A stretch of 61,688 nt of DNA, the filler included, from Basidiobolus meristosporus CBS 931.73 (Eukaryota; Fungi; Basidiobolomycota), in the NCBI GenBank assembly GCA_002104905.1. It is 4 parts of 4 records of this genome, joined end to end, with 100 filler letters (N's around TTAATTAATTAA, not from the genome) between each part and the next. Parts side by side here need not be neighbours in the genome. Positions count along the whole stretch, not along the records: positions 12,268 to 30,859 come from MCFE01001055.1; 3 more parts are not named here. One strand, 5' to 3'. Shown here piece by piece: positions 12,268 through 30,660 of the stretch (positions within the stretch are counted from its first letter, which is position 1; the number at the start of each line of letters is the position of its first letter). The notes under the pieces were generated by a model that was not told where the DNA came from, did not search any database, and saw only the letters and a list, made by a program, of their open reading frames with translations. Position numbers and translations under genes: made by a program.

Positions 12268-13260
12268 ACTAGGGAATTGAGCTAGTTGATAATTACAATG
12301 CCTCTTTTTACCCCCCCCCACTGAACCTATGCCCCGGCACAGATAATTATTGACCAAAATTATTATGAAAGGCTTGCGTATGCAGGAGTGTCACCATACA
12401 GTCATTCCTGAGGTATGTGGGTGTGGTATGGATCTACTTGGTCCATATATCAATACAGTAACCCGCCCAGTGCGTACTACAACATCAAATGTTTTACATA
12501 TTCCTGTGCAATATACGAGAATCCGTAGGGAGGAACAGCAAAGGAAGCTTAAAGCGTTGATAATACATATTAAAGCATTGCAATAAATAACTCTTAGCCC
12601 CTTCATTTTGATTTTCGAATAAGTTAACAGTTGGGTAGAGTGGCGTCAATCTGTAGCTCAAGCTTCTGGAGAACTGGTTGGGTGAAGGCTTGAGTAGTGG
12701 GTCACTGCTGATGATTTCTATCCATGTTTTTTAGAGCCTAGTGTTGACATGGGCATCTTCAAGTAATTGCGAGATGGCAAGGTTATTACAGACTTGGGGA
12801 ACGCGTGAGGCTGGCAACAGAGCAACGAAAACCAAGCGCACTGGAGCAGTCAGAGGTTGGCAAGTCTGAGTGGATGGTCACCAGTAGCCGCTACAATAAA
12901 GTTCGACTACCGACTTACTCTTTTCCTGCTTTTATGCAAAGTTGTGTACCTGCTTAAACATTCAGTTATGAATTTTGATTTTAAAGATCAGAAAACTGTA
13001 ATCGGAATCAAACAAGTATGTCATTTTGCAAACAAAATTTTAAGCATTTTTCTTTTCAATGTGATTTTGCAGCAATATAAATTGATATTTTGAATGATAG
13101 TTGGATAACAGCAAGCTGTCAGAATGAGCGTACTGGGAATGTACTATATGCATAATCCTGTAAAGTACAGATGCTCTCTATTTATAGGAAAAAATTCGTT
13201 AGAAATTTTCACTCATTTCGTTGCCTAATCCCATAATATTGAAATCGACGAAAATAAATG
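12268..13260. repeat. Segmental duplication, copy 1 (copy 2 at about 24227-25400)
   Basis: Long near-identical blocks, e.g. 12640-13060 vs 24530-24970 (gtagagtggcgtc...gcaaacaaaattttaag). Confidence 0.9.
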
Positions 13261-13269
13261 TATTATATG

Positions 13270-13598
13270 TACTGTTGTGGACTGCTTGGCGTATTCCAGC
13301 GCGTTGGCCCCACCCTCCAGGTCGAGACTGGGTCCTGCTTGATACTTGGTATTGAAGCCTTTATAGCTGTTGGAGTTAGCAATGTTTAGGTTATTGTGGT
13401 TTCTGGTCACGGTGGTCAAACCTGGCACAATAACGGGGATTGAACATTGGACGTCTTAACAACGTTTTGGTAGCAATCATTCGTATACTGTACACATGGT
13501 AAACTGCGATAATGAACCCTTCTATACTCGCGAGTGCATGGAGAGTAACCGCCGATTGCGGCAAGGTCTAGAATCACTGCTACGGTAATAAAGCGCAT
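13270..13598 (-). pseudogene. Family A secreted-protein paralog, pseudogene
   Basis: MRFITVAVILDLAA then a deletion of the signal-peptide end, CTREYRRVHYRSLPC, a frameshift near 13430, and 3' truncation relative to 15181-15678. Confidence 0.85.
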
Positions 13599-13946
13599 GT
13601 GGAGTGAATAACGTATTTGTGGGCTGGTATATAGGCTTGGCTGGACAAATTGCTATAACTTATTTCATGGATTAATCAGGTCATTACTCACACTATCGCT
13701 ATGATACTTATATGCTGCCCTTGTATATTGTTGATGTAACACCACTTTGTGCTGCATATCCAATACTATACGAGATAATCCCTACTCCACCATGCCACTA
13801 AATTCCTTGAAAGTTACTGTTTCCGCACTTGCTCCTCTCCCTTTTTGCTGGGTAACCCCACAGACTAGGCTTAAGTTCTCCCGGCTTTTTCTGTCTTCTA
13901 AAAGCGATCCAGGGCGACAAAAAATACGTCAATCCCATCAGTTGCA

Positions 13947-14204
13947 TCATGAACACGCTTTGCCACGCTTCCACTCTGTGTACCTAGGCTTTGAGAAAGC
14001 TCCTGGATCATCCTCACGCATTCTGCGAACCTTACTTCCTGTCCAGAATGAAGATGGAAACTCTTCATTACACGCCTTTACGTTTTTATATAGCTCTACA
14101 TACTCGAGGGTTGCCGTAGTATTGGGTCGGTTGCGTTCAAGAGGAGCGGCAAAAGAGGATGCAAGTATCAAAGCACTGACTAAGAGGATATCTTGAGTAG
14201 ACAC
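13947..14204 (-). pseudogene. Family C small secreted protein (85 codons) with GTG where the paralog has ATG; start-lost or non-ATG
   Basis: (V)STQDILLVSALILASSFAAPLER... reads like a signal peptide, with TATAAAG just upstream. The paralog remnant at about 27690 reads ATG CTT TTC ATA AAT ATC CTC TTA, aligning ATG with GTG at 14202-14204. Confidence 0.55.
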
Positions 14205-14727
14205 TCCTCTACGGCCTTTATATTCGTTATTATACCTTCTTGGTTTGTAAGTCACACAACATGCAACTTTAATATTAATCACGCTTGGGAAGAACCCAGG
14301 GATGATTTAAACAGTCTAGTTCATCTGGTATAAAGTAGCACTTTTCTTGGATTGGATTCATCACTAAGCCATATCTCTTACATCTGTGCATCGATAACAG
14401 CAGTGTCTTGAACGATCATTACTCACTACTCAGTATCATCTAGACAATTGCCTCGTTTACAACTGGTTTATTGACCATTACATAGGAAAAGATCTATGTA
14501 CTTCGTCTTTGAGGCATCCATTGAATTTCAGTTTAATTTAGTCTGCCAAACCCGGGATTTTGTATTTATTGATCGTAAATTCGATTGCCATTTCTTCATT
14601 ATGAAAAGACACTGATGGGTAACGACAAAACAATAGGTAAAGATACTTTGTGATGCTTGCTTTGAGTGATGGTAGTACTTCAAGAATATTTGATTCGATA
14701 CGTTTTCGTAAGGTCCAAGTACAAGCT

Positions 14728-14809
14728 GGTGAGGTGGCCGAGTGGTCTAAGGCGCTGCGTTCAGGTCGCAGTCTCTTCGGAGGCGTGGGTTCGAACCCCA
14801 CCCTCATCA
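14728..14809 (+). tRNA. tRNA-Leu(CAG): tRNA-Leu (anticodon CAG), intronless, 82 nt
   Basis: Acceptor stem GGTGAGG/CCTCATC, D-arm GCCGAGTGGTCTAAGGC, anticodon arm CTGCG-TTCAGGT-CGCAG, long variable arm, GGTTCGAACCC T-arm, followed by TTTT. Confidence 0.97.
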
Positions 14810-15180
14810 CTTTTGTTATATTCCTATAGCTTGCACAAAAATTATAAGAGAAAATATCACAATGCTAACAGTTGCTGAGTAGTCTGTCAATCTCGAATAT
14901 TTGTGTTACCAAAGTCAATCCGGTAACCCTGCCAGGCATTCTCTCTGATATCAACCTTTTCAGTGGAGGGCAGCATCACTAAAGACTGAGGGTGAGTATG
15001 TTAGTACGTAAGCGAATATCTAATATTAATGCCCGCAGCTCTGATCATGATACAGGTGCGTGCAAGTAAAAAGCTAATCATAAGTAACAAATATAAGAAT
15101 GTCATTTGAACTTTATTGATTGAGGATTTTTACTAATAATGTGGTGACGGCTGCCTACATCTTCAGCTCATGTCATCGCA

Positions 15181-15678
15181 CTAATTGTATTGAACGTTTT
15201 GCTCTGGACAATCTTCTACGCATTGCATCTCTGCCACAGGGGTTGTGTATTGTATATCTTGGGTGGGCTGCATCAGGACGTAGGGAGAGAAAGAACCATC
15301 TTCCAAGTGTTCCGCTCCCTTTTGCTTAGCATATTCTAATGCGTTGGCCCCACCCTCCAGTTCGAGACTGGGCCCTGCTTGATACTTGACATTGAAGCCT
15401 TTGTTGCTGTTGGCGTTAGCAATGTTCAGGTTATCGTGCTTTCTGGTCACCGTGGTGAAAACCTGGCGCAATAACGGGGATTGGACATTCGTCGTCTTAA
15501 CGACAGGCAAAACTCGAGCGTTTTGGTAGCAATCGCTCGCATACTGTGCACATGGTAAGCTGCGATAATGCACCCTTCTATACTCGCGAGTGCATGGAGA
15601 AGAACAGCCGATTGGGACAGCAACGGCAACTTGAAGAGCGGCAAGGCCTAGAATCACTGCTACGGTAGTAGAGCGCAT
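15181..15678 (-). CDS. Family A predicted secreted protein, 165 aa, unknown function
   Basis: Signal peptide MRSTTVAVILGLAALQVAVA-VP, TATA element about 45 bp upstream, and two further paralogs in the contig. Confidence 0.8.
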   Translation of the reverse strand: MRSTTVAVILGLAALQVAVAVPIGCSSPCTREYRRVHYRSLPCAQYASDCYQNARVLPVVKTTNVQSPLLRQVFTTVTRKHDNLNIANANSNKGFNVKYQAGPSLELEGGANALEYAKQKGAEHLEDGSFSPYVLMQPTQDIQYTTPVAEMQCVEDCPEQNVQYN

Positions 15679-16030
15679 GCTGAAGAATAGCTGAGAAATG
15701 AGTTAGTTGCATAGGCCGCTATATAGCATGGGAGGCTATATAATAAGGCTAAGTCGAGGGCATAAAGTGAGTCTTGTTACATTCTATAGACTTTATTGAG
15801 GAAGCCTGTAACATATAAAACACATGCACTGGAATGACAGCCTCTGTATATATATATGGCTCTATCACCGCTGCCCATACTTCTCTTCAATACTCACAAT
15901 GACATTGTGTACAACGATAAGTGCCACTGTTTCTGTGTGTGCATATCAGCAAATTCTTGAGTACTGTACATCATCAGTATACCGAGTAATATGTTGCTCA
16001 TTTTATTTCGTAAATTTACTTTCACTAGAC

Positions 16031-16576
16031 TTAATATCTGTTTCCACTGAAATATCTAACTTTGAAGTGGCGACGAGCAGATCTCTTATACTTCTTGTAC
16101 CCACCTTTAAGCGCACGCGCTGCTGGCTGAGTGATGATAATTTGTGACTGTTGCTGCTTGGGCTGGTACAGGGTTTGGTCGATGACTTGCGCTTGGTCGA
16201 ACTGGTTTGAGTTGGACAAGGCATTGGCTTTACTGGAGGAATGGCCATTGATTTTGTCCAGCAAGGCTTGGGATGGTTGAAGATTGGAAATATCGAACCC
16301 TTGCAACCCAGAGAATCCTGGCTGCTCACCCGAAGTCTCGCTTGTCTGCATTGGCTCACTCATCTCCGAATCATCCCCCTCCTCAGTTGACGGCTGGTAT
16401 TCTTGACTGGGGGCCGAAGTGTCCTGATAACAAGCACCCTGTTGTTCGACGCATGGCTCATTGGTGAAGGCTACCGGGGAGTCACCGAGTGGGGTAGCGG
16501 AGATTGCTTGCAACGAAGCGATGGCGGAAACTAGCAAGAGGAAGGAAAGCTGCATGACTGGCTGGTGGAGTCTCAT
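16031..16576 (-). CDS. Family B predicted secreted Gln/Ser-rich protein, 181 aa (or 174 aa from the second Met), basic C-terminus
   Basis: Signal peptide MQLSFLLLVSAIASLQAISA-TP, TATAAA about 20 bp upstream, paralogs at 26590-27103 and about 30460-30660. Confidence 0.8.
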   Translation of the reverse strand: MRLHQPVMQLSFLLLVSAIASLQAISATPLGDSPVAFTNEPCVEQQGACYQDTSAPSQEYQPSTEEGDDSEMSEPMQTSETSGEQPGFSGLQGFDISNLQPSQALLDKINGHSSSKANALSNSNQFDQAQVIDQTLYQPKQQQSQIIITQPAARALKGGYKKYKRSARRHFKVRYFSGNRY

Positions 16577-17893
16577 GCGAATTTTGCCGATTTATATCAC
16601 CTCGATCCCACTCAATTAGGCTTCGTTCATAGCACTAGCTTTATACGAGCTAGATTGATTTAACCTTTGCTACTTTACCTCTTCGTACCAAGGCTACACA
16701 GTATAGGTTGCACTTCAAAGTGTGAGGAATGAGGGCGATCTGGTCAATGATATCCTTAATATCGTTCCAAATTCTCTCAGTTTTTGCAATAACTATCCGT
16801 GTTAGTAAGGACTTCGGTAATTTTTTACTAATGAGCTTGAGGGTTACCGTCCAGAAAGTCCAAGGTCATTGCGGTCAATTTCAATGGGGTTTGGTACTCT
16901 TTTGTATCAGTGTAGTCCTGTGAGCTTAACATGCACTTTTGGTATCTTTATTCCATCTTTAAGGCAAGTGTCTCTTACAATAGTCCTGTCATTGCCTGGA
17001 AGGTATTGTCCTTTGGTAGTGCTGTTTTCTTGCTGTACACATGATTAAATATATTGCTGATCTGACCCTGCCGCAACTGGAGAGCAGCAACCACGGTCAA
17101 GCTTTGGGGCAGGCTTATTAAATTAACCAGTTATTACAAGAACCTAGGGTTGTTGCTGATTGGTGAACGATACGACTGTCATGGGGTGTACAGCACAGTA
17201 CAGGCGAGAATAAATTGGTTAGTTTTTTGCCAAGAGTTGGGGATATTGAGTGGATAGTGCTTGGGATAGTTGAGGCTGCCTTGGAATTTCTTGTTGTAGT
17301 ACACGCGTTTTCAATTAGTTATTTGTCAAGAAACAAGCCAATTGTGCCTGTTCACTTTATTTGTGTTACGCTTTATCTATGCTGCTACCATTGATAGCTT
17401 GGATGGCGATGCTTTCTTGCAAGACACATGCACTTATCTATTGCAAACTTTACCCTGCCACAGATGGAGTACAGCGTCGGATTAAGAGCTCAGCCACCGA
17501 CTACCACGGTCATTCTTTTGGGCAGGTTGATTATATAACCTGTTATTTCAAGAACAGACTCATTGCTGATTGGTGCAAATCCTTGTCACCAATGACCGGC
17601 ATGGTGCATAGAGACGGTGCCGGCATGAAGGAAATATTCATGGATGTGCTTAGCTAGTACTGGTTTCCTCAGGTAATGTTGCAGATTTGGCCTCAACTGT
17701 AACCATTCATGATTTCTGGATCATTTCTCCAAGCTTGGCCTAAGACTCAGCACTTTAGGTGGGAAGCCGCTATACTTAGTAGAAAAGGGCACATGAAGCA
17801 GCCAACACTAAGCCACCACCTGGATAAGGTGATATAAAGCAGCAGGTGTGGGCTTGTCAGTCTCAAGACCTATTGCACTCCACTTTCTCAGCC

Positions 17894-18112
17894 ATGGTAT
17901 CCGATCAAGAAGCCCGTTTGTATTCTGCCGATGTCAGAGAAGAAATTGCCAGAGCCAAGAGAGCTAACAACGGGAACTACGCCTCAGTCACAGTCAAAGG
18001 GATTCGCTGGACTTGGAGAGGACCCGGAACTGGCGAGCTGTCCTTCAAGCAGATCCTCGAGGGGAGAAAGGGGACTGCCTGCGTGGATAGCCAGACATGG
18101 GCAATCTCGTAG
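17894..18112 (+). CDS. Family D small protein copy 1 (72 aa), no signal peptide, unknown function
   Basis: GATATAAAG about 60 bp upstream and gccATGG context. Differences from copy 2 are mostly synonymous in this frame. Confidence 0.6.
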   Translation: MVSDQEARLYSADVREEIARAKRANNGNYASVTVKGIRWTWRGPGTGELSFKQILEGRKGTACVDSQTWAIS

Positions 18113-18882
18113 GGTTTGGTTGGTGCTTGCGTAGCCGGTGGACTCTTGGAGATGTTACTGTTAAGGATATTTAGCTGAAACATTGCGAAATAAATTCATC
18201 CAAATCCGCATTCCTTTGACCTAGCTGTGATATGCTCAATGATGCAAAAAGCATTGCATTACAAACATCCAGCACATTTGCTACCTCAAGTCCACATAAC
18301 AGTGACATTTTGTACCTTAAGCCTTGCACTTCCACAGTTTTCAACGATATATTACTAGTCACTGGAATATCCAATCCTCAATGCGTATTTTTTAAATCGT
18401 TGCATTATTGAGTCGGTGTGAATCTTCCCTTTAATAACTTACTGCATGGTTAGGCCGTGTACGTGTAACCATCAGTCCATGGAGATGTTGTGGCTGCACA
18501 GTCTTGGCTGTATAACTTACTGAGTGTCATTGTTGCAAGAGATAACAAGTGTGGATATTGGATAATATATACTGATTGTCGTGGGTGTCTTTGGCTTCAC
18601 CACAGTTGGCCATCCAGTCTTTGCATCTGGTTCATGCCATGCTTGACCAATCCACTCAACGTAAACAACTATTCATCTGGAAGGTGCGTGGATGGTGCGT
18701 GGATGGTTCGTTACCGGCGGACAGTCAATCTGGATTACTTGCTATAAATTGTTGCGGGCTGTATGGAATAAGTGAGGCGTCAAAATGCCGTAGTATTGAG
18801 TCACCGTCTGGGCGGGATAGATATAAAGCAGCAGTTGTGGACTTGTCTGTCTTGAGACTTATTGCACTCCACTTCCTCAGCC

Positions 18883-19107
18883 ATGATATCTGATCAAGAA
18901 GCCCGTTTGTACTCTGCTGATGTCAGAGAAGAAATTGCCAGAGCCAAGAGAGCTAACAACGGAAACTACGCCTCAGTCACAGTGAAAGGGATTTGCTGGA
19001 CTTGGAGAGGACTCGAAACTGGCGAACTGTCCTTCAAGCAGATCCTCAAAGGGAGAAAGGGGACCGCCTGCGTGGATAGGTTTGGTTGGTGCCTACATAG
19101 CCGGTAG
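18883..19107 (+). CDS. Family D small protein copy 2 (74 aa)
   Basis: Tandem duplicate of 17894-18112 with the same TATA. An approximately 23-nt indel changes the C-terminus. Confidence 0.55.
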   Translation: MISDQEARLYSADVREEIARAKRANNGNYASVTVKGICWTWRGLETGELSFKQILKGRKGTACVDRFGWCLHSR

Positions 19108-19949
19108 ACTCTTGGAGATGTTGCTGTTAAGGATATTTAGCTGAAGCATTGTGAAGTAATAAACATTCCTTTGACCCAGCTGTATTATGCTCATTGCACT
19201 TTATTAAATATATGTGAATTGCTATTTTGATTGTCTAAGTGTGCAACTGCCATGTACAGGCTAAACTTGCAGCTTTCAGTATCTCAGGTTCTATTGTTTT
19301 TACAGACAAAGATAAATATTTTCTCGGGGGTGAATAGGCTGAACATCCTTTCCACAAGACTTGGTAATATGTTATCGTGAAATTCACACTTACCAGGTGT
19401 GGGGCAAGTATTACTGTTGTCCAAGGTTGATGATTCTGTGAACAGAATAGGAAATTTCAAAGGCGCCTTCATTATACCTTTTTCGAATAACCGTCATACA
19501 GATACAACACGCTTTACGATACAGTTGAAAGATAAAGATGTGATATCGAAGAGTGTTATTGTAGGGATGTGTAGAGTTCAAGAGTGAATGGCAACTACTT
19601 CAACGAATATTCTTGGCGTATTTTTAGTTGCAGTGGAGAGTATTTCTTCAGATACCGGGAGCAAAAACGGATATTTTGAATAAACATTAAAGTGATTTAA
19701 TGGTATCACGGGCCCTGATCTTGGGGGGAATAAATAGTCACATACGTCTACTAGTGTATTTATGCTTATTGTCCAGCATCCACCAGAGGTTTTTGACAGA
19801 GTAGCACTGTTATTTATACCGTTGTAAATGATGTGTAGCATGTATGGTTAGAATACCCCAACATACACTGTTTACTTCTTTATACAGCTACTTTGTATAC
19901 TTGCATTATTTCTAGCATTCAACATTGAACGTATTGGATTTATTGATTA

Positions 19950-20147
19950 TCAGATACAGCATCTCTGGCCAGACTTGCATCCAGTATCCCAGAACACGGA
20001 TCTCCAACCGGTGGGGCAGCCACCAGAAACGCACAAGGAGCCTCTTGAGTTCCCTTGGGCTTGGCACGAGAGAGCATCTACGGAGCCAGAACTGAAGCTG
20101 GCCACAAGGAAGGCGACCATCAAGGAGACTGCAAATTTCTTCATCAT
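19950..20147 (-). CDS. Secreted six-cysteine defensin-like peptide, copy 1 (25-aa signal + 40-aa mature)
   Basis: MMKKFAVSLMVAFLVASFSSGSVDA / LSCQAQGNSRGSLCVSGGCPTGWRSVFWDTGCKSGQRCCI. C-x10-C-x4-C-x12-C-x5-CC spacing; TATATA about 55 bp upstream. Confidence 0.85.
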   Translation of the reverse strand: MMKKFAVSLMVAFLVASFSSGSVDALSCQAQGNSRGSLCVSGGCPTGWRSVFWDTGCKSGQRCCI

Positions 20148-21187
20148 TGTTTTGATTGAGAGCTTAGTGTGTGAATGATGTCTAGCAGCAAGGTTAGCGC
20201 AATATATAGGCGTCATTTCCCCATTGTTGCACATACTTTTGTCAATAGTTGTCTACGAATGGTTGTACAAGAGAAGAAGGTTACCTGGGTAATGTAAACC
20301 AGTTCCAGGAAATTATATGTATTGATGGCCAACATCAAAAGAGCAGTAGCGTTTAAATGGTATTTCTCGTATGGCATAGTGTCACCTCTTTATTCAAACA
20401 TATAAATGATGCGGCAATAATATGCAAAATCTGAACTGGGCTGCTCATCACATTTTGTGCCACACAGCTTTTGCCGTGCAATACACTCATCTACGAAGAA
20501 TGTTCTAAATGCAGTACCACACGGATGAAAGTAAGCCTTCCCTGTTATTTTCAAGTGTAGAACTACTTTGCCGATAGTTCAATAGAAAATTTATTAGGTA
20601 GATACAACATCTTTGGTGTCCCGGAATACCAACCTTTGACCAATACCTGAAGGGCGCAAGTAGAGAGTGTCAACACAGCTGGCCTCAATAATGGCAGGTA
20701 AGGAGAGTTGTAACATGTAAAGTAACCAAGTACTCTTGAAGCATGTGCAATATAGGTCATTACGTACACTGCTAATTATCCAACTCTGTGCAAAGCACTC
20801 ACTCAACGGTTGTTGTGGCTAGGCAGTCTGTAACAGTGGAACATGTAAACCAGCTCTATACACGAATAACAATGTAATGGTTACATTCACTCTACTTATT
20901 GACAGTTATAGCAATCATGATATGCAGCATTGTTGCTTATACAGTGTAAATGATATATAGCACTGTGGCAAACAACAGTTCAATAGATGGTTCCCAATAC
21001 AGTTGCACATATTAAGCCCCAAAGATGAGACCAGCATATTTTGCTATACTATTGACTCCCATTATACTGCTATATAGTTGCTGCTTGCTTCTTAAGCACT
21101 AATCTCCGTATATACAATACGGCTTGTCTCTAGCATCTGCATTGTCATGTGTACGTTCCACATTGAACGTACTGGATTTATTAACTA

Positions 21188-21385
21188 TCAGATACAGCAT
21201 CTTTGGCCAGACTTGCATCCAGTATCCCAGAATACGGATCTCCAACCGGTGGGGCAGCTACCGGAAACGCACAAGGAGCCTCTTGAGTTCCCTTGGGCTT
21301 GGCACGAGAGAGCATCTACGGAGCCGGAACTGGAGCTGGCCACAAGGAAGGCAACCATCAGGGAGACTGCAAGTTTCTTCATCAT
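21188..21385 (-). CDS. Secreted six-cysteine defensin-like peptide, copy 2
   Basis: Intact 65-aa ORF; the mature peptide differs from copy 1 only by G18S. Confidence 0.85.
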   Translation of the reverse strand: MMKKLAVSLMVAFLVASSSSGSVDALSCQAQGNSRGSLCVSGSCPTGWRSVFWDTGCKSGQRCCI

Positions 21386-22461
21386 TGTTTTGATTGAGAG
21401 CTTAGTGTGTGAATGATGTCTAGCAGCGGGGTTGGCTCAATATATAGGCGTCATATCCACATTGTTGTACATACTTTTGTCAATAGTCGCTGTGGCTAGC
21501 TCTAGGAATGGTTGTACAAGAGAAGAAGGCTACCTGGGTAATGTAAACCAGTTACACAGAGCTGCAGCATTGAGATGATATTAATACACAAAAACAAATT
21601 GGCAATCCATGAACCGGGTTGCTCATCAGACATGCCATATATAGTGGTAGTTCTACACCAATAAAGCATCTTTGGCCTCTAACTGGAAAGTAAATCAAGA
21701 CCTCAAGATGCATAGACAATCTTGATAATTACGTTTACTGTAACACGTACATTCCATGACTGTTGTGGCTAAGCAGTCTGTGACAACAGAATGAGTGTGG
21801 ATACATTGATTACAGTCAAATCTACCATTTGAGACTTAAAGCGGTAACGATATTCAATCGAGATATGCAAAGTCCTAGGTAACACTGTCGCTTATAAAGT
21901 ATAAATGAATCTTGATTTTTAAGCCTAGATGCTGCTATTTGCAATAACACGCAAGTATTTGATATAACTTTAGTGTTTGTAACGATTTGCATTGATTTTG
22001 CTACAAGTAAATATAGATATGAGATTGCTGTCCCACTTGGGAATTGAAATATGTTGTGTTCTTTACGACGACTTAGCCGATAATTCATTAGATAATTTAT
22101 TACGTAGATACAACATCTTTGGTGTTCCGGAATATCAAACTTTGACTTACGCCTGAAGGGCGCAAGTAGAGAGTGTCAACACAACTGGCCTCCATAATGG
22201 CAGGTAAGGAAAGTTGTAATATGTAAAGTAAGCAAGTCCTCTTGACGCATGAGCAATACAGGACATCATGTACACTGTTACTTATCCTTCCTCTGTGCAA
22301 AACACTCACTCACATAAAGAGGAGGCTAGCATATTTTGCTACACTTTGGCCATAGTTACTGCTTGCTTCTTAAGCGCCAATCTCCGAATACTCTGTCCTG
22401 TTTCTAGCATCTGCATTATTGTGTGTAAATTCAACATTGAACATATTGGATTTATTAACTA

Positions 22462-22659
22462 TCAGATACAGCATCTTTGGCCAGACTTGCATCCAGTATC
22501 CCAGAACACGGATCTCCAACCGGTGGGGCAGCTACCGGAAACGCACAAGGAGCCTCTTGAGTTCCCTTGGGCTTGGCACGAGAGAGCATCTACGGAGCTG
22601 GAACTGGAGCTGACCACAAGGAAGGCGACCATCAAGGAGACAGCAAATTTCTTCATCAT
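22462..22659 (-). CDS. Secreted six-cysteine defensin-like peptide, copy 3
   Basis: Intact 65-aa ORF; mature peptide identical to copy 2. Confidence 0.85.
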   Translation of the reverse strand: MMKKFAVSLMVAFLVVSSSSSSVDALSCQAQGNSRGSLCVSGSCPTGWRSVFWDTGCKSGQRCCI

Positions 22660-22803
22660 TGTTTTGATTGAGAGCTTAGTGTGTGAATGATGTCTAGCAG
22701 CAAGGTTAGCTCAATATATAGGCGTCATTTCCCCATTGTTGCACATACTTTTGTCAATAGTCGCTGTGGCTAGCTCTACAAATGGTTATGCAAGAGAAGA
22801 AAG

Positions 22804-22815
22804 TTACCCGGGTAA
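22804..22815. promoter_or_regulatory. Palindrome TTACCCGGGTAA about 150 bp upstream of the defensin-like gene; variants upstream of every copy
   Basis: TTACCTGGGTAA at 20281-20292, CTACCTGGGTAA at 21530-21541 and 22835-22846, each followed by TGTAAACCAG. Confidence 0.4.
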
Positions 22816-24226
22816 TGTAAACCAGCTCAGAAGGCTACCTGGGTAATGTAAACCAGTTCCACAAAGCTGCAGCATTATGGCATAGTGGTACAGAGTTAAT
22901 GTGGTATTAATACACAAAATCAAAATCCATAAACCGGGTTGCTCATCAGATATGCTATTGTGTAGGGGTAGTTCTACACCAATAAGGCATCTTTGGTCTC
23001 TAACGGGAAAGTAAATCAGGACCTCGAGATGCATAGACAATGTTGATAATTACGTTTACTGTAGCATGTACATTCTATGGCTGTTGTGGCTAAGCAGTCT
23101 GTAACAATGGAATGAGAGTGAATACCGTTTGAGACTTAAAGCGGTAATGATATTCAATCAACATATGCAACGCCCTAGGTAGCACTGTCGCTTATAAAGT
23201 ATAAATGATATATAACATTGTTGCACATGGTCTGCGATAAACACTAGCTAGAGAACCCCAAAAATACCGATGAATCTTGATTTTAAATCTAGATGCCGCT
23301 ATTTGCAATAACACGCAAGTGTTTGTTGGATGACTCTTTGATTTTTCGTCATTCCACATACAAGTAAATATAGATATGACTAAGTGGTATGCAATGGCTT
23401 TGTGGATAAGAAGCTTACTACTTTTCATTCATTAAAGTAGTGACTAGTGGTGAAGTTTATCCACAGCTTACATTAATAAGACTTTACCCGTGGAAATACA
23501 CACTGAAGATTAAGATATTTACCATCTGGGCACTAACTGCCTGATCCTCTTTCCCTCATATCCCGACATGTGCTTGTGCATACAAGTGCGTTGTTAGACT
23601 TTTAGGTAGCATTGGTATTGCCACTATTGCCCTACTTAGAGTTGAACCAAGAGTACTGGTGAAATGAGCGAAGTGCAATTTAATGAATCAATCAGTGCTG
23701 TTCATTGTCCTTGTCAAGCCATAACAAAATATTCGGTTAGGCCATCAATCCATTCAAATTGTTCATGTCTCTAGAGCGGGCTAAGTCTTGGCATAGTGGT
23801 GGGCTGAGATGATAGACCCGAATCGAGGCTACATTCACTGCGTTGGTGGCAAGAAAACTGAGTATGTAACACCGCAGGTTTGTTCATTCATTTCAATGAA
23901 GCCTTTTTGGATGAGAAATAGAAGTACGATAACAGCCATGCATCCTCAATACTTCGGTGCATGCGTTGGTATGCCGGCCAAACTCCGCACTTCCCATTGT
24001 AAGATGAGCTATGAGGAATCAAGTCGGCAATCTCCAGAATAACCGTGTCAAACACTCTTCTTCCGGATTGAGCGTTTTCTTTGGCGCATTTGTCTACCCA
24101 TAGACCATGGTTACTGAGATGTGAGTGTAATATACAACAATGCAAGGCATATTTTAAGAGAACACGTACGCTTTTGGACCTGACTTACCGGAGTAAGGAC
24201 TTCACCTTTGAAACAGTGTCTGTGGT

Positions 24227-25400
24227 ACTAGGGGATCGAGCTAGAAGCGAGATAAATAGATTGATAATTACAATGCCTCTCTGTACCCCCCCCCCCACTG
24301 GCAATATGCCCCAGCACAGATAGCTATTGCCCGAAATCATTACGCAGGAGTGTCACCATACAGTCATTCCTGAGGTATGTGAGTGTGGTATGGGTCTACT
24401 AAGGAACAGTAAAGGTAACCTAAAGCGATGGTAATGAATATCAAAGTATTGTAATAAATAATCTCAATCCCATAACTCTTAGCCCCTTCATTCTATCTTT
24501 CGCTAAATTTCGATTTTCGAACAAGTGAGCAGTTGGGTAGAGTGGCGTCTATCTGTAGCTCAAGCTTCTGGAGAACTGGTTGGGTGAAGGCTTGAGTAGT
24601 GGGTCCCTGCTGATGATTTCGATCCATGTCGAGGGCGTTGTCCTCTGGAGCCTAGTGTTGACATTGGCATCTTCAAGTAATTGCGAGATGGCAAGGTTAT
24701 TAAAGACTTGGGGAACGCGTGAGGCTGGCAACAGAGCAACGAAAACCAAGCGCACTGGAGCAGTCAGAGGTTGGCAAGTCTGAGTGGATGGTCACCAGTA
24801 GCCGCTACAATAAAGTTCGACTACCGACTTACTCTTTTCCGTTTTTTATGCAAAGTTGTGTGCCCGCTTAAACATTCAGCTATGAGTTTTGATTTTAAAG
24901 ATCAGAAAACTGTAATCGTAATCATACAAGTATGTCATTTTGCAAACAAAATTTTAAGTATTTTTCTTTTCTTTGCTTGCTGATTTTCAATATGAATATG
25001 TAGCGAGAGAGATTGGTATTTTGATTTGATTTTTGAATGATATTTGGTTAACAACAAGCTGTCAGAATGTGCAGACCGTCCTCGCCAGGCTGTTGGAATA
25101 ATCAACCGGCAAGTTCATCAACTGAACAGGTCCTAAGGTCCCGAAAGACCGATCGGCCACTGTTCACACTTCCCTTTACGGACAGCGCACTACGTCTCAT
25201 CTACCAGCTTGGTATTAGTGTCTTTGTTGGGAAACAAAGACTGGGAATGTACTATATACATAATCCTGTAAAGTACAGTCGTAACGATACCAAACGACAG
25301 ATGCCCCCTATTTATAGGGAAAAAATCGATAAAATTTTTCACTTATTTCGTGGCCAAATCCCATAATATTGAAATCGACGAAAATAACAGTATTATATAT
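24227..25400. repeat. Segmental duplication, copy 2 of 12268-13260 (with an extra segment at about 25065-25240)
   Basis: Direct alignment by eye. Confidence 0.9.
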
Positions 25401-25999
25401 ACTACTCCGGACTTGAGTAATTGACTATGAAATAACCAACTACGTAAGAACAGTGCCATTCCTGTGTGCACGCTTCAAGCCCTTGCTTGAGAAATCGTAG
25501 TATGAGTCATTTTGCGTCTCACGAATAATGCAATCGTATGTCGACTTGAACCAAAAATCACATTTACGGCAATTTAACCCCCAATATCGATACAACTATT
25601 TACAGATCGATGGAATGAGTACACAAACATTGAAACTGGCGCTAAATAGGGCTCACTGACATCTTAAGGTAGGAGCCCACCAGTTCTCCAAATGCGGTAG
25701 TTGATACACAACGCTGATTGAGCTTCTCTACCCGGCTATGTTGCATGCACTATTTACCCTACAGTGTCCCTGTTCCTCCGGTGTGTGTCGTTGTGGGGTA
25801 TTGCCAAATGTCGATTCTTTTTGGACTGGTACACCATGTCTACCGTGGATTGATAGTCTATGATACTGTGAGAGTAGGGTAGTCGCGCAAAGAGGGCTTA
25901 TTTGTCTTGCATACTCAATATTCTCAGTTAAGGCTGATTTATCTATTAGGCGCAATTGTCAGCACAATGAGTGTATTGAATATTTTGTTCTTTCACACA

Positions 26000-26428
26000 T
26001 TATGTCTCTGTTACTGGGGTTGTGTACTGTACATCTTGGGTGGGCTGCATCAGAACGTAGGGAGAGAAAGAACTATAGGCCTTTTGCTTGGCATATTCTA
26101 ATGCGTTGCCCCGACCCTCCAGTTTAAGGCTGGGCCCTGCTTGATACTTGACATTGAAGCCCTTATTGCTGTTGGCATTAGCAATGCTCAGGCTATCTTG
26201 CTTTCTGGTCACGGTGGTGAAAACCTGACGCAATAATGGGGATCGGACATTGGGTGTCTTAAAAACAGCCAAAACTCGAACGTTTTGGTGGTAATCGGTC
26301 GCATACTGTACACATGGTAAGCTGCGATAATGAACCCTTCTATACTCGCGAGTGCATGAAGAAGAACAGCCGATTGGGGCAGCAACGGCAACTTGATTCG
26401 CGGCAAGGCCTACAGTAATAAAGCGCAT
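26000..26428 (-). CDS. Family A paralog, 142 aa, open frame but shortened signal peptide (possibly decaying)
   Basis: MRFITVGLAANQVAVAAPIGCSSSCTREYRRVHYRSLPC...; internal deletions relative to 15181-15678. Confidence 0.55.
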   Translation of the reverse strand: MRFITVGLAANQVAVAAPIGCSSSCTREYRRVHYRSLPCVQYATDYHQNVRVLAVFKTPNVRSPLLRQVFTTVTRKQDSLSIANANSNKGFNVKYQAGPSLKLEGRGNALEYAKQKAYSSFSPYVLMQPTQDVQYTTPVTET

Positions 26429-26589
26429 GCGGAGCGAATAACGTATTTGTGGGCTGTTGTATAGCATACAATATGGGTTAGCTGGGAAAATTGCTATTAT
26501 ATATTTCATGGATTAATCAGGTCATTACTCACACAATTATTATGCTTTTTAAGTACCATCGGTATTTTGCATTCCCTTCACTCGTTATT

Positions 26590-27103
26590 TTTTCAATTTT
26601 CTTCCATTATTTTGTGGAACTCACGATGATTTTCTGGAGTATCTTTGAAGTGGCGACGAGCAGAGCTAAAATACTTCTTGTACCCACCTCTACTGCTGGC
26701 TGAGTGATGATAATTTGTAGAGGGTTTGATCAATGACTTGCGCCTGATCGAACTGATTTGAGTTGGACAAGGCATTGGCTTTACTGGCAGAATGGCCATT
26801 GATGTTGTCCAGTAAGGCTTGGGATGGTTGTAAATTTGAAATGTCAAACCCTTGCAACCCGAAGTCTGGCTCGTTTGCATTGGCCCACTCATCTCCGAAT
26901 CATCCACCTCCTCAGTTGACGGCTGGTGTTCTTGACTGGGGGGCTAAGTGTCCTGATAACAAGCACCCAGTTGTTCGACGCATGGCTCATTGGTTGAGGC
27001 TACCTGGGAGCCACCAAGTGGGGCAGCGGAGATTGCTTGCAGTGAAGCGATGGCGGAAACTAGCAACAGGAAGGAAGGCTGCATGACTGATTGGTGAAGT
27101 CAT
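26590..27103 (-). pseudogene. Family B paralog, frameshifted
   Basis: High nucleotide similarity to 16031-16576. Small deletions after the ATG and after the signal peptide give an early TAG. Confidence 0.85.
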
Positions 27104-27439
27104 GCGGACTCTCTCGATCCCACACAATTAGCTTTATGCGAGCTAGATTGATTAACCTGAGTGCCTCGCCGTTTGCTACTTCTCAAAAAATGTGAGACAG
27201 TGCATACACGAAATAGTAATCAGCATTTAATTTCAACCAAGTGCTTATAGTATAAAGCTAGCAGTAGACAATGAGAATGTAGACGTTGGGAAGAGTGATG
27301 CTTAAAAGAGGGCACAGTAGTTCTTGGCGCAATTAGTGTTGTCAAAAACGCAGTCCGAGTCCTTGGTGCATGTCTGATATTCGGAGCCACTGCAAAAAGA
27401 CTTTAGCGTCAGTAAGAATGCAAACTTACTAAACCTTTG

Positions 27440-27700
27440 GATATTGTTGATGTAACACCACTCTGGTGCACTTTGCTACATATCCAATGCCAAACGAGAT
27501 AATCGCTACTCCTCCATGGCACTGAATACCTTGTAAGTTACTGTTTCTGTACAGAAAACTCCATGGCAACTTACCCTTCTCCAGCAGTAGCCTTTGTTAC
27601 ATATCCTTGCCGCCTTTTTGCTTAGTAATCCCACAGACGAGGTTTGAGCTTTTTGCTGTCTGCTCAAAGCGATCCAGCTAAGAGGATATTTATGAAAAGC
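27440..27700 (-). pseudogene. Family C region remnant (paralog of 13725-14204) with large deletions
   Basis: gatgtaacaccact...gagataatc...aagttactgtttc and aaagcgatccag/taagaggata are shared with 13725-14200. Confidence 0.65.
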
Positions 27701-29031
27701 ATTTTGTCGTTAAGTGTTTCTTGAATGGTCACTCCTAACAACTAGCGGATATTGCTTTGCTTTTTTGAGGATGGTTCTTGTTTGCACCCATAATTGCAAT
27801 AATCCTTTGATTGGTCGTAAAGCTGGTTCAGTCGTTGATATACAATCTTCTACGCATCTACGCGGAGCTTTCCCGATTTATTAAACCTTCTCAATCCCAT
27901 TCAATTAGGCTTCGTTCATAGCATTATGCAAGATAGATTGATTTAACCCGGTTGGCTTAGAGTACTCGTGTGAATAAATTTATTTGTTGTTTGTCAAGAG
28001 TCGACAATATTGAGTGGATAGTACAGGGATTAGTTGAGGTTACCTTGGGCTTTCTTGTTGCGATATACGCACTTTTGATTAGTTATATGTGTTCGGCATT
28101 TGACTGTGCCAATACACTCGAAAACCTGGATTCCCACAATTGATTTATCAGTGTAGCTTGCCTGAATGAAGGTTTGATATGACGAGCCCTTTGGTACCCA
28201 TGTTCCATCTCTAAGCAGGGAAGGCGCCACACTCTTTGCCTCTGGCAAGTCGTTGAATAAATGACATAGCTTCTCCCCATGAAATAAGTTTATACGGCAC
28301 AGGTAGCATATCCTCCTGATGCAGAGGTATCAGCCTCATCCAAGATAGCTAGATTGACTCTGTGGTTGAGGCCTTCATTCTTGCCTTGGTTGGCGGCATT
28401 GAAAGTCAGGGTAATGAAGTCAATCTTGGCCAATTTCTTGATGTAAAGGCCCGCAGTATGTTCCTTCACTCCTTGTTCAGGATTGCATTTTAGACTCTCT
28501 TGGGGAGGCAAGGGCACTGCATTGGTACCGCTTCACCGGGTCACTTGAGTTGAGTTAGCACTTAGAGGTCAACATTTTGCATTTACCATTACCATGATGA
28601 GACAATGAACCTATTAAAAGATTTTGACTCTGTTAATCAGTTCTAACCATATGTGAATAATTAAGTAACTGTAATTAAGTTTTGACAGTGATAATGCTTA
28701 TCATTCAGGTACACAGCATTTTCTTCACCATCTCTCTGCCTCAACCAGACATTGCTAGACCAGAAGCTTGGGAGCTTATATAGTCAAGATTGGACTGAAC
28801 CAAAAGGCATTAGAAGAGAATAGGATAAGGTAATATCAAGAACCAAAGGGAGGGCTGGGTGTACTATTTATGTGCTTTTTGGTTGGATCACTGAAGCTGG
28901 GGTTATACTCCTGGCAAAGTATACTGGGGGCCAGAGCTTGATGCATATTTTTGTATTTTCTAATGTATGCTCAAGATAATGAACTAGATATGCAAGCACA
29001 CAAAACCATTGTTTACAGCAAATACATTATA

Positions 29032-30459: not shown

Positions 30460-30660
30460 AATCTCTCAAATCTAAGTCGCCTTCATTGTCAGTCAATGAT
30501 AGGTCTTTGTTGTTGGAAGCCAGTGCCTCCTGATAACAAGCTCCCAACTGCTCAGCACATAGGTTGTTGATGTGAGATACCTGAGATTGACAAAGATGTG
30601 ATTGCCGCAACAAGCAAGAGGAAGGAAAGCTGCGTGACTGGATGGCGGAATCCCTCAGAA
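30460..30660 (-). pseudogene. Third family B remnant
   Basis: The minus strand gives HPVTQLSFLLLVAAITSL and, in a shifted frame, LCAEQLGACYQE. Confidence 0.7.

Follow-up and report, generated by a model that had tools for sequence, protein, structure and literature searches.

The fungus Basidiobolus meristosporus CBS 931.73 (assembly GCA_002104905.1) carries a tandem array of three intact genes for a small secreted peptide that is predicted to adopt the beta-defensin (trans-defensin) fold, with a short N-terminal helix and a three-stranded sheet. The array lies in the window analysed here, a stretch of 61,688 nucleotides (nt) joined from four parts of that assembly, in the part taken from MCFE01001055.1. 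Current reviews assign every fungal defensin to the cis (CS-alpha-beta) superfamily and describe trans-defensins from vertebrates and certain invertebrates only (PMC8877149). The peptide family was not found described in the literature when we looked for trans-defensins in fungi, for defensins in Basidiobolus or for the motifs of the family itself. Judged by the structure models, the family is new and has a known fold, one that is so far unreported from the fungal kingdom. A first-pass annotation of the sequence had called the array atypical for fungi, which holds for the literature but not for genomes, where the family is found in four fungal phyla. A multi-copy secreted family of this fold with such a distribution would widen the known range of the fold, reopen the question of how beta- and big defensins originated, and add a new scaffold to the few fungal peptide antibiotics (plectasin, copsin).

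All three array genes are intronless and lie on the minus strand, and each encodes a precursor of 65 amino acids (aa) that consists of a classical 25-aa signal peptide and a 40-aa peptide. The precursor runs from a basic MMKK start through a hydrophobic stretch and a Ser-rich stretch ending V-D-A into L-S-C…. In three of three copies the mature part has the framework C-x10-C-x4-C-x12-C-x5-CC-I-stop, two Trp and a net charge of +3, as first described from the sequence. Two of the mature peptides are identical; the third has Gly for Ser before the third Cys. The repeat search found a 300-nt repeat family starting at 19887, 21125 and 22399, and these start-to-start spacings of 1238 and 1274 bp, together with the open reading frame (ORF) listing, reproduced the proposed gene number and spacing exactly and far in excess of chance. 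No fourth gene copy was found in the piece by tblastn.

Two AlphaFold2 models support the fold assignment, and both matched almost only trans-defensin folds, as the first-pass annotation had proposed. Folded from an alignment of 23 rows, the Basidiobolus peptide reached a predicted local distance difference test (pLDDT) score of 89.1, and its model shows strands and a short helix at the N-terminus. A replicate with a Thermomyces member, using an alignment of the other subtype only, gave the same secondary structure at pLDDT 83.8. Foldseek against PDB returned a list that was nearly all defensin-fold (tau-AnmTx Ueq 12-1, hBD-1, hBD-2, AvBD3, Crp4, AvBD11), with tau-AnmTx Ueq 12-1 as top match (E 0.38, template modelling score 0.58). 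VIA-align superposed hBD-1 at Z 3.6 with a root-mean-square deviation (rmsd) of 2.2 Å over 33 residues. An exhaustive search of 48,161 PDB chains, independent of Foldseek and with a cut-off of Z>=2, gave 24 chains for the Basidiobolus model, 23 of them with the trans-defensin fold, and 21 chains for the Thermomyces model, 20 of them with that fold. The trans-defensin-fold chains matched by the Basidiobolus model comprised avian, crocodile and human beta-defensins, alpha-defensins, oyster big defensin, crotamine, helianthamide, SCRiP, tick carboxypeptidase inhibitor, platypus DLP-1 and gallin. No fold-search list contained a CS-alpha-beta structure.

The best structural matches were beta-defensins, at Z 3.2-3.9 and rmsd 2.0-2.4 over 33-34 aligned residues. 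The best match of the Thermomyces model was hBD-2 (Z 3.9, rmsd 2.0 Å, 34 aligned, 35% identity). Since 12 identities over 34 positions can be reached only if all six Cys are superposed, the model implies that the Cys of the peptide fall on those of beta-defensins and would pair 1-5, 2-4 and 3-6. In the ESM Atlas, the nearest structures belonged to the Defensin_beta and Defensin_beta_2 clusters; a search by features gave no usable match for the window protein, and for two relatives gave sub-threshold leads only. The language-model neighbours of a Pleurotus member were beta-defensin-like clusters (score 0.78), which we treat as a lead only.

The peptides belong to a family of about 40 detected members. 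The mature peptide of the middle copy, which is also the first row of the family alignment A2, was used as phmmer query against 1.84 billion representatives and gave 21 matches; a profile search then added more. Three of the phmmer matches (P0006, P0016 and P0022) were discarded as long repetitive proteins that matched over a short stretch only. The family occurs in Zoopagomycota, Mucoromycota, Ascomycota and Basidiomycota, in sciarid fungus gnats, in a springtail and on metagenome contigs. Fungal members come from Basidiobolus, Benniella, Pleurotus eryngii, P. djamor, Leucoagaricus, Macrolepiota, Coprinopsis, Cyathus, Pseudocercospora, Septoria, Thermomyces (two species), Aspergillus lentulus, A. 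sclerotialis, Penicillium bovifimosum, Fusarium chlamydosporum and Aphanocladium, and arthropod members from the sciarid flies Bradysia odoriphaga and Pseudolycoriella hygida and the springtail Orchesella dallaii. In Benniella, consecutively numbered paralogues (KAK3821542-49) lie on one contig. The named members are all without a Pfam domain, and their names are uninformative.

The family framework is C-x(10-12)-C-x4-C-x12-C-x(5-6)-CC, and the consensus reads x-S-C-Q-x-Q-G-…-C-V-x-G-x-C-P-x-G-W-R-S-V-F-W-D-x-G-C-x-x-G-Q-R-C-C-I. Across the family, conservation is seen in the six Cys, in the Pro that follows the third of them, in a hairpin segment R-S-V-F-W-D that hardly varies and in the C-terminal CC-I/V. 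Two subtypes can be told apart: in the first (Basidiobolus, Agaricales, Benniella, arthropods) the domain directly follows the signal peptide, and in the second, the ascomycete type, there is a propeptide, which ends K-R in some members. The 42-aa mature domains of P0042 (Aphanocladium album, Hypocreales) and P0043 (Aspergillus lentulus, Eurotiales) are identical, which in fungi of different classes suggests either extreme constraint or recent transfer. In P0026, a 330-aa protein from an ENA metagenome, the family domain sits at the C-terminus of a larger secreted protein with another Cys-rich region and three G-L-K-A-D-x-G-K-Y/W-x-A-R-C-x-x-C repeats (beta-trefoil or fascin-like), so that the domain can act as a module. 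The shorter P0011, from the same cluster, showed a weak FRG1 match only. A scan of 185,579 prokaryotic genomes with alignment A4 gave one partial match, in the Acidobacteriaceae metagenome-assembled genome JASHTH010000128.1 (L011 203-301). This was the only prokaryotic R-S-V-F-W-D-x-G-C match with tblastn support, and we judged it to be probably chance: neither the first Cys region nor the terminal CC is present, and the match lies among overlapping ORFs in GC-rich DNA.

Conservation within the array is concentrated in short cores. The coding sequences (CDS) of the three units are 95-96% identical and the 100 nt upstream of the ATG 93-99%, whereas identity falls to 37-46% between +101 and +450 downstream and to 37-76% between -800 and -301 upstream, with many indels in both regions; the contrast of near-invariant mature peptides with spacers diverged by indels, read from the sequence at first pass, was thus borne out. 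The first 40 nt or so past the stop codon are conserved, and similarity falls off beyond them. Every unit has an exact 15-nt block containing TATATA some 55-60 nt before the ATG and an AATAAA 6-11 nt past the stop, to which we assign putative TATA-box and polyadenylation roles from sequence. With its own conserved proximal promoter and AATAAA, each unit looks like a self-contained transcription unit. A 31-nt tandem repeat of 2.3 copies (22798-22868) lies about 140-210 nt upstream of the gene that is first along the coding strand; the other two units are without it.

Features of the three-gene array; positions are those of the window and all features lie on the minus strand.
Feature	Position	Strand	Basis or remark
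Whole three-unit array	19887..22698	(-)	Repeat family, identity profile and position-specific flanks in six loci
Conserved cores (proximal promoter, CDS, about 40 nt of 3' end)	19887-20186, 21125-21424, 22399-22698	(-)	Diverged spacers between
Gene copy first along coding strand, CDS	22462..22659	(-)	ORF listing, translation, start/stop check
Its signal peptide	22585-22659	(-)	
Its mature peptide	22465-22584	(-)	
Its putative TATA-box block	22712..22726	(-)	Upstream; identical 15 nt
Its AATAAA hexamer	22451..22456	(-)	3' of the CDS
Middle gene copy, CDS	21188..21385	(-)	ORF listing, translation
Its signal peptide	21311-21385	(-)	
Its mature peptide	21191-21310	(-)	
Its putative TATA-box block	21438..21452	(-)	Upstream; identical 15 nt
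Its AATAAA hexamer	21177..21182	(-)	3' of the CDS; within the supposed intron of the JGI models
Gene copy third along coding strand, nearest the 181-aa gene, CDS	19950..20147	(-)	65 codons + stop; ORF listing, translation, start/stop check
Its signal peptide	20073-20147	(-)	
Its mature 40-aa peptide	19953-20072	(-)	
Its putative TATA-box block, GACGCCTATATATTG (coding strand)	20200..20214	(-)	Upstream; exact 15-nt block
Its AATAAA polyadenylation-like hexamer	19939..19944	(-)	3' of the CDS

The sole close database match of the array piece was B. meristosporus CBS 931.73 itself. Over many kilobases the piece shares 91-97% identity with five contigs of that strain (L001-L004 and L010) and is identical to none, so the array constitutes a sixth paralogous or homeologous locus. 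Every one of the six loci carries the same array, with 17 copies counted and 15 of them intact, and the protein of the middle copy is identical to copies in L002 and L003. Far flanks were compared by identity × coverage: at the same array position in different loci the values were 0.70 upstream and 0.59 downstream, against 0.05-0.19 at different array positions, while CDS values were 0.96-0.97 in every comparison across array positions and the six loci. As the far flanks are alike only at the same array position in different loci, the triplication is older than the multiplication of the loci: it is an old, stable arrangement and was not amplified recently.

Purifying selection acts on the coding sequence: among 11 intact Basidiobolus copies, pN/pS came to 0.16 over the mature region and 0.21 over the signal peptide. 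The middle copies of L001 (3959-4156) and L003 (11273-11470) have a disrupted signal-peptide region and an intact mature part; these are pseudogenes or assembly errors. Such breakage in two of 17 copies is what could be cited for decaying repeats or a gene-prediction artefact without function. Against 15 intact copies, the low pN/pS, the conserved promoter, TATA block and AATAAA, and homologues in four fungal phyla and insects, we consider that explanation extremely improbable.

Vertebrate beta-defensins (hBD-1, hBD-2, avian AvBD3 and AvBD11, crocodile CpoBD13) were the best structural matches of the array family in our searches. They too are secreted peptides of about 40 aa that directly follow a signal peptide, with six Cys ending in CC, C2-x4-C3 and C4-x5/6-CC spacings, and the helix and three strands predicted here. 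The beta-defensin consensus framework is C-x6-C-x4-C-x9-C-x6-CC, so the family differs in its C1-C2 loop (10-12 residues against 6) and C3-C4 loop (12 against 9); it differs also in its inconsistent charge, its fungal host in the case of the array, and intronless array genes in place of the two-exon, phase-1 beta-defensin gene. Big defensins (oyster Cg-BigDef1, horseshoe crab) have a C-terminal domain with the beta-defensin fold and a terminal CC and were matched at Z 2.6, but they carry an N-terminal hydrophobic globular domain, whereas the mature array peptide starts two residues before the first Cys. The same fold as that predicted for the family is found in peptides of sea anemones and other invertebrates (tau-AnmTx Ueq 12-1, Hact-4, helianthamide, SCRiPs and tick carboxypeptidase inhibitor); these differ in Cys number or spacing, share no sequence similarity with the family, and act by channel modulation or enzyme inhibition.

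Several observations weigh against reading the peptides as beta-defensin-like defence peptides. In absolute terms the structure matches score low (Z<=3.9; E>=0.38 with Foldseek), as is usual for chains of about 40 residues, in which low Z and non-significant E-values are common, and AlphaFold2 may have been guided mainly by the Cys pattern. Pfam defensin models gave no significant match among the window proteins and 37 family members: with PF00711 and PF13841, the three window proteins had no match at E<=10, one of 23 members matched Defensin_beta at E=1.5, and none of 14 ascomycete-type members matched. Other Pfam matches were stray and confined to single members (Lustrin_cystein 0.023, DUF6991 0.031, CLIP_SPH_mas 0.09-0.25), none of them significant, and a PDB sequence search with both family profiles gave no match at E<=10. 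The cationic character claimed at first pass holds for the window copies but is not kept across the family, where net charge ranges from -3 (the Leucoagaricus member) to +6. Synonymous sites and the non-coding proximal promoter of the array genes are equally conserved, suggesting that gene conversion probably contributes to the near-invariance of the peptides. Finally, some ion-channel toxins and enzyme inhibitors are built on the beta-defensin fold too, so that the fold alone cannot fix the function.

At the sequence level, a likeness was seen to the pit-viper beta-defensin-like peptides defbBj, defbBju and defbBn02 of Bothrops (PMC8777785 Table 5). This trio shares with the fungal family C-P-x-G-Y/W-x-S-L/V after the third Cys and a D-C-x-x-G-Q-R/K-C-C-I end, motifs that the other snake beta-defensins of the same table and the human ones do not have; it differs from the family in C-terminal basic tails and a shorter C1-C2 loop. 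The Bothrops peptides came from a literature search with the C-terminal motif of the family and are in that sense a cherry-picked match. When the family alignment A2 was compared with defbBj by hhalign, the probability was 95.4 and the identity 41% across 32 columns. Because of this selection, a Cys-fixed shuffle control was run on six beta-defensins of that table, with search-key holders left out and 1000 shuffles each. Crotamine, defbBd03 and defbLm02 were not significant, crotasin and hBD2 were marginal (p about 0.06), and only Bothrops defbBju stood out (z 6.5). Going by these motifs, the Bothrops likeness may be due to chance or convergence. The fold-level link to animal defensins is good; the sequence-level link is a lead only. 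A true homology between the family and the beta- and big defensins of animals, by which trans-defensins would not be an animal invention, we hold to be doubtful. If it were real, trans-defensins would date to the common ancestor of fungi and animals or would have moved between kingdoms, and the intron-bearing sciarid and springtail copies would offer a living example of the transfer of an immune-type peptide gene between fungi and arthropods.

With moderate confidence, we favour a role as a secreted defence or antimicrobial peptide. This reading draws on the fold, the precursor design, an array that recalls the tandem copsin paralogues cpp1 and cpp2 of Coprinopsis (PMC6461984), and retention in fungi and arthropods. 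Fungal cis-defensins (plectasin, copsin, eurocin) are likewise small, secreted and disulfide-rich, with paralogues also in tandem, and are likely functional analogues of the array peptides, although they have the CS-alpha-beta fold with C-x3-C and C-x-C; the absence of these motifs, noted earlier for the array, extends to all family members. Once its signal peptide is cleaved, the peptide would be secreted into the surroundings of the fungus (gut contents, dung, insect remains), where it would serve as a defence against competing microbes. Its most likely mode of action would be to bind, by way of the invariant R-S-V-F-W-D surface, one particular conserved target in the envelope or cell wall, since the spread of charge within the family favours a specific target over charge-driven membrane lysis. 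With the three-copy array present at five or more paralogous loci, many near-identical genes would presumably give high output. Retention of the gene in both fungus and insect fits an action on third-party microbes.

A toxin or inhibitor aimed at animals, protecting the fungus from grazers or acting on the gut of amphibian, reptile or insect hosts, is in our judgement unlikely. Such a peptide would use the beta-defensin scaffold against ion channels, in the manner of crotamine and sea-anemone peptides, or to inhibit enzymes, in the manner of helianthamide and tick carboxypeptidase inhibitor. It would account for the presence of crotamine, helianthamide, tick carboxypeptidase inhibitor, SCRiP and anemone peptides among the structural matches, and for an R-S-V-F-W-D segment that looks like a specific protein-binding surface in a family whose charge is not conserved; the fusion of P0026 to beta-trefoil-like repeats, which may be lectin-like, would also suit it. 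However, fungus-feeding insects and a springtail themselves keep the gene, which would be strange if the toxin were aimed at arthropods, genuine host-defence beta-defensins stand as the best structural matches, and no toxin or inhibitor family was matched by sequence in the PDB and Pfam searches. The very strong conservation of one surface across phyla would also suit the ligand of a receptor, and thus an endogenous signalling or developmental peptide (a spore or hyphal cue) with no part in antagonism. The patchy fungal distribution, the presence in arthropods, the multi-copy arrays here and in Benniella, and the fusion to extracellular domains are instead typical of defence effectors rather than core signalling, and make a signalling role very improbable.

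The public annotation of the Basidiobolus genes is wrong in two ways, in its splicing and in the name CBM1. Models of the Joint Genome Institute (JGI) end …SGQRC-YARN… or …YARDKP…, because a GT within the codons of the fifth-to-sixth Cys pair was taken as a donor site and spliced to a downstream piece; one model, P0004, fuses two neighbouring genes. We rejected the spliced model on four grounds: its 3' 'exon' differs between copies and sits in diverged sequence, the AATAAA falls within the presumed intron, the product would lose its last Cys and keep five, and nearly every relative terminates CCI or CCV. That nearly all members stop directly past this point shows the unspliced ORF to be correct.

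Four of the Basidiobolus models are labelled 'CBM1 domain-containing protein' in UniRef/UniProt. The name is borne only by the mis-spliced models, and members from Pleurotus, Macrolepiota, Aspergillus and flies are 'uncharacterized'. CBM1 domains have four Cys, with QCGG and YxxQC motifs and first spacings of x10 and x5. The family resembles them in its length (about 36-40 aa), its disulfide-rich, aromatic-containing sequence and the spacing of its first three Cys (x10, x4 against x10, x5), but it has six Cys with a terminal CC, where CBM1 has four without one, and neither motif. A module binding cellulose, chitin or the fungus's own wall, in the form of an aromatic-rich, disulfide-stabilised wedge, could be argued from the label, from these first spacings and from three conserved aromatics (W/Y/F23, F27, W/Y28) that could form a sugar-stacking face. 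Pfam CBM_1 (PF00734) nevertheless matched none of the window proteins and none of the 37 members scanned at E<=10, and no CBM1 chain appeared at Z>=2 in the two exhaustive structure searches or in the Foldseek top 40. With six Cys in place of four, both motifs absent and the name confined to mis-spliced models, a carbohydrate- or cell-wall-binding role is decidedly unlikely. Despite the UniProt label, the Pfam and structure searches thus gave no chitin- or cellulose-binding module; the first-pass annotation had named a match to a known non-defensin domain, such as a chitin-binding module, as counting against it. Both the mis-splicing and the misleading name are corrected here for the public records of a genus that also causes human basidiobolomycosis.

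The fly members of the family are real insect genes. They lie on megabase-scale contigs of about 35% GC and have a 64-66-nt GT-AG phase-1 intron at the end of the signal peptide, just before D-A (L005 10001-10268; L012 10001-10285). Phase-1 introns in this position are common in genes for secreted proteins. The closest relative outside Basidiobolus, P0005 (L006 196-453), has a mature peptide 78% identical to that of Basidiobolus, and its gene appears to have an intron at the sciarid intron site, through which the published model reads in frame. The intron-bearing arthropod copies, set against fungal genes that have no such intron, make the family a candidate for gene transfer between fungi and arthropods. 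Its presence in fungus gnats and a springtail makes it a candidate case in which a defence peptide would have crossed kingdoms, between grazers and the organism they feed on. The family tree, built on 42 columns, is too short and for the most part too poorly resolved to give the direction of such a transfer.

The array is flanked on both sides by a segmental direct duplication (12300-17300 and 24300-28100) of 76-95% identical blocks. The duplication carries two ORFs with signal peptides, one of 165 aa (15181-15678) and one of 181 aa (16031-16576), both on the minus strand. Both ORFs recur, at 26000-26509 and about 26590-27100, in an altered or frame-shifted form, and a third copy of the signal-peptide region of the 181-aa gene lies at 30591-30652. 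The 165-aa ORF showed a sub-threshold match to Pfam Myticin-prepro (E 0.0025; 18.4 bits against a cut-off of 28.5) that covers nearly the full profile. Myticin-prepro describes the precursor of a mussel antimicrobial peptide; the match may be chance or may hint at a cluster of defence peptides at the locus. A scan for sigma-70 promoters and terminators, of no relevance to a eukaryote, gave counts at the level of shuffled sequence. Between the 181-aa gene and the array there is a local tandem duplication (17831-18193 and 18820-19159) of about 340 nt, 90-92% identical, with its copies about 970-990 bp apart. ARAGORN placed a tRNA-Leu gene (anticodon CAG) at 14728-14810 on the plus strand.

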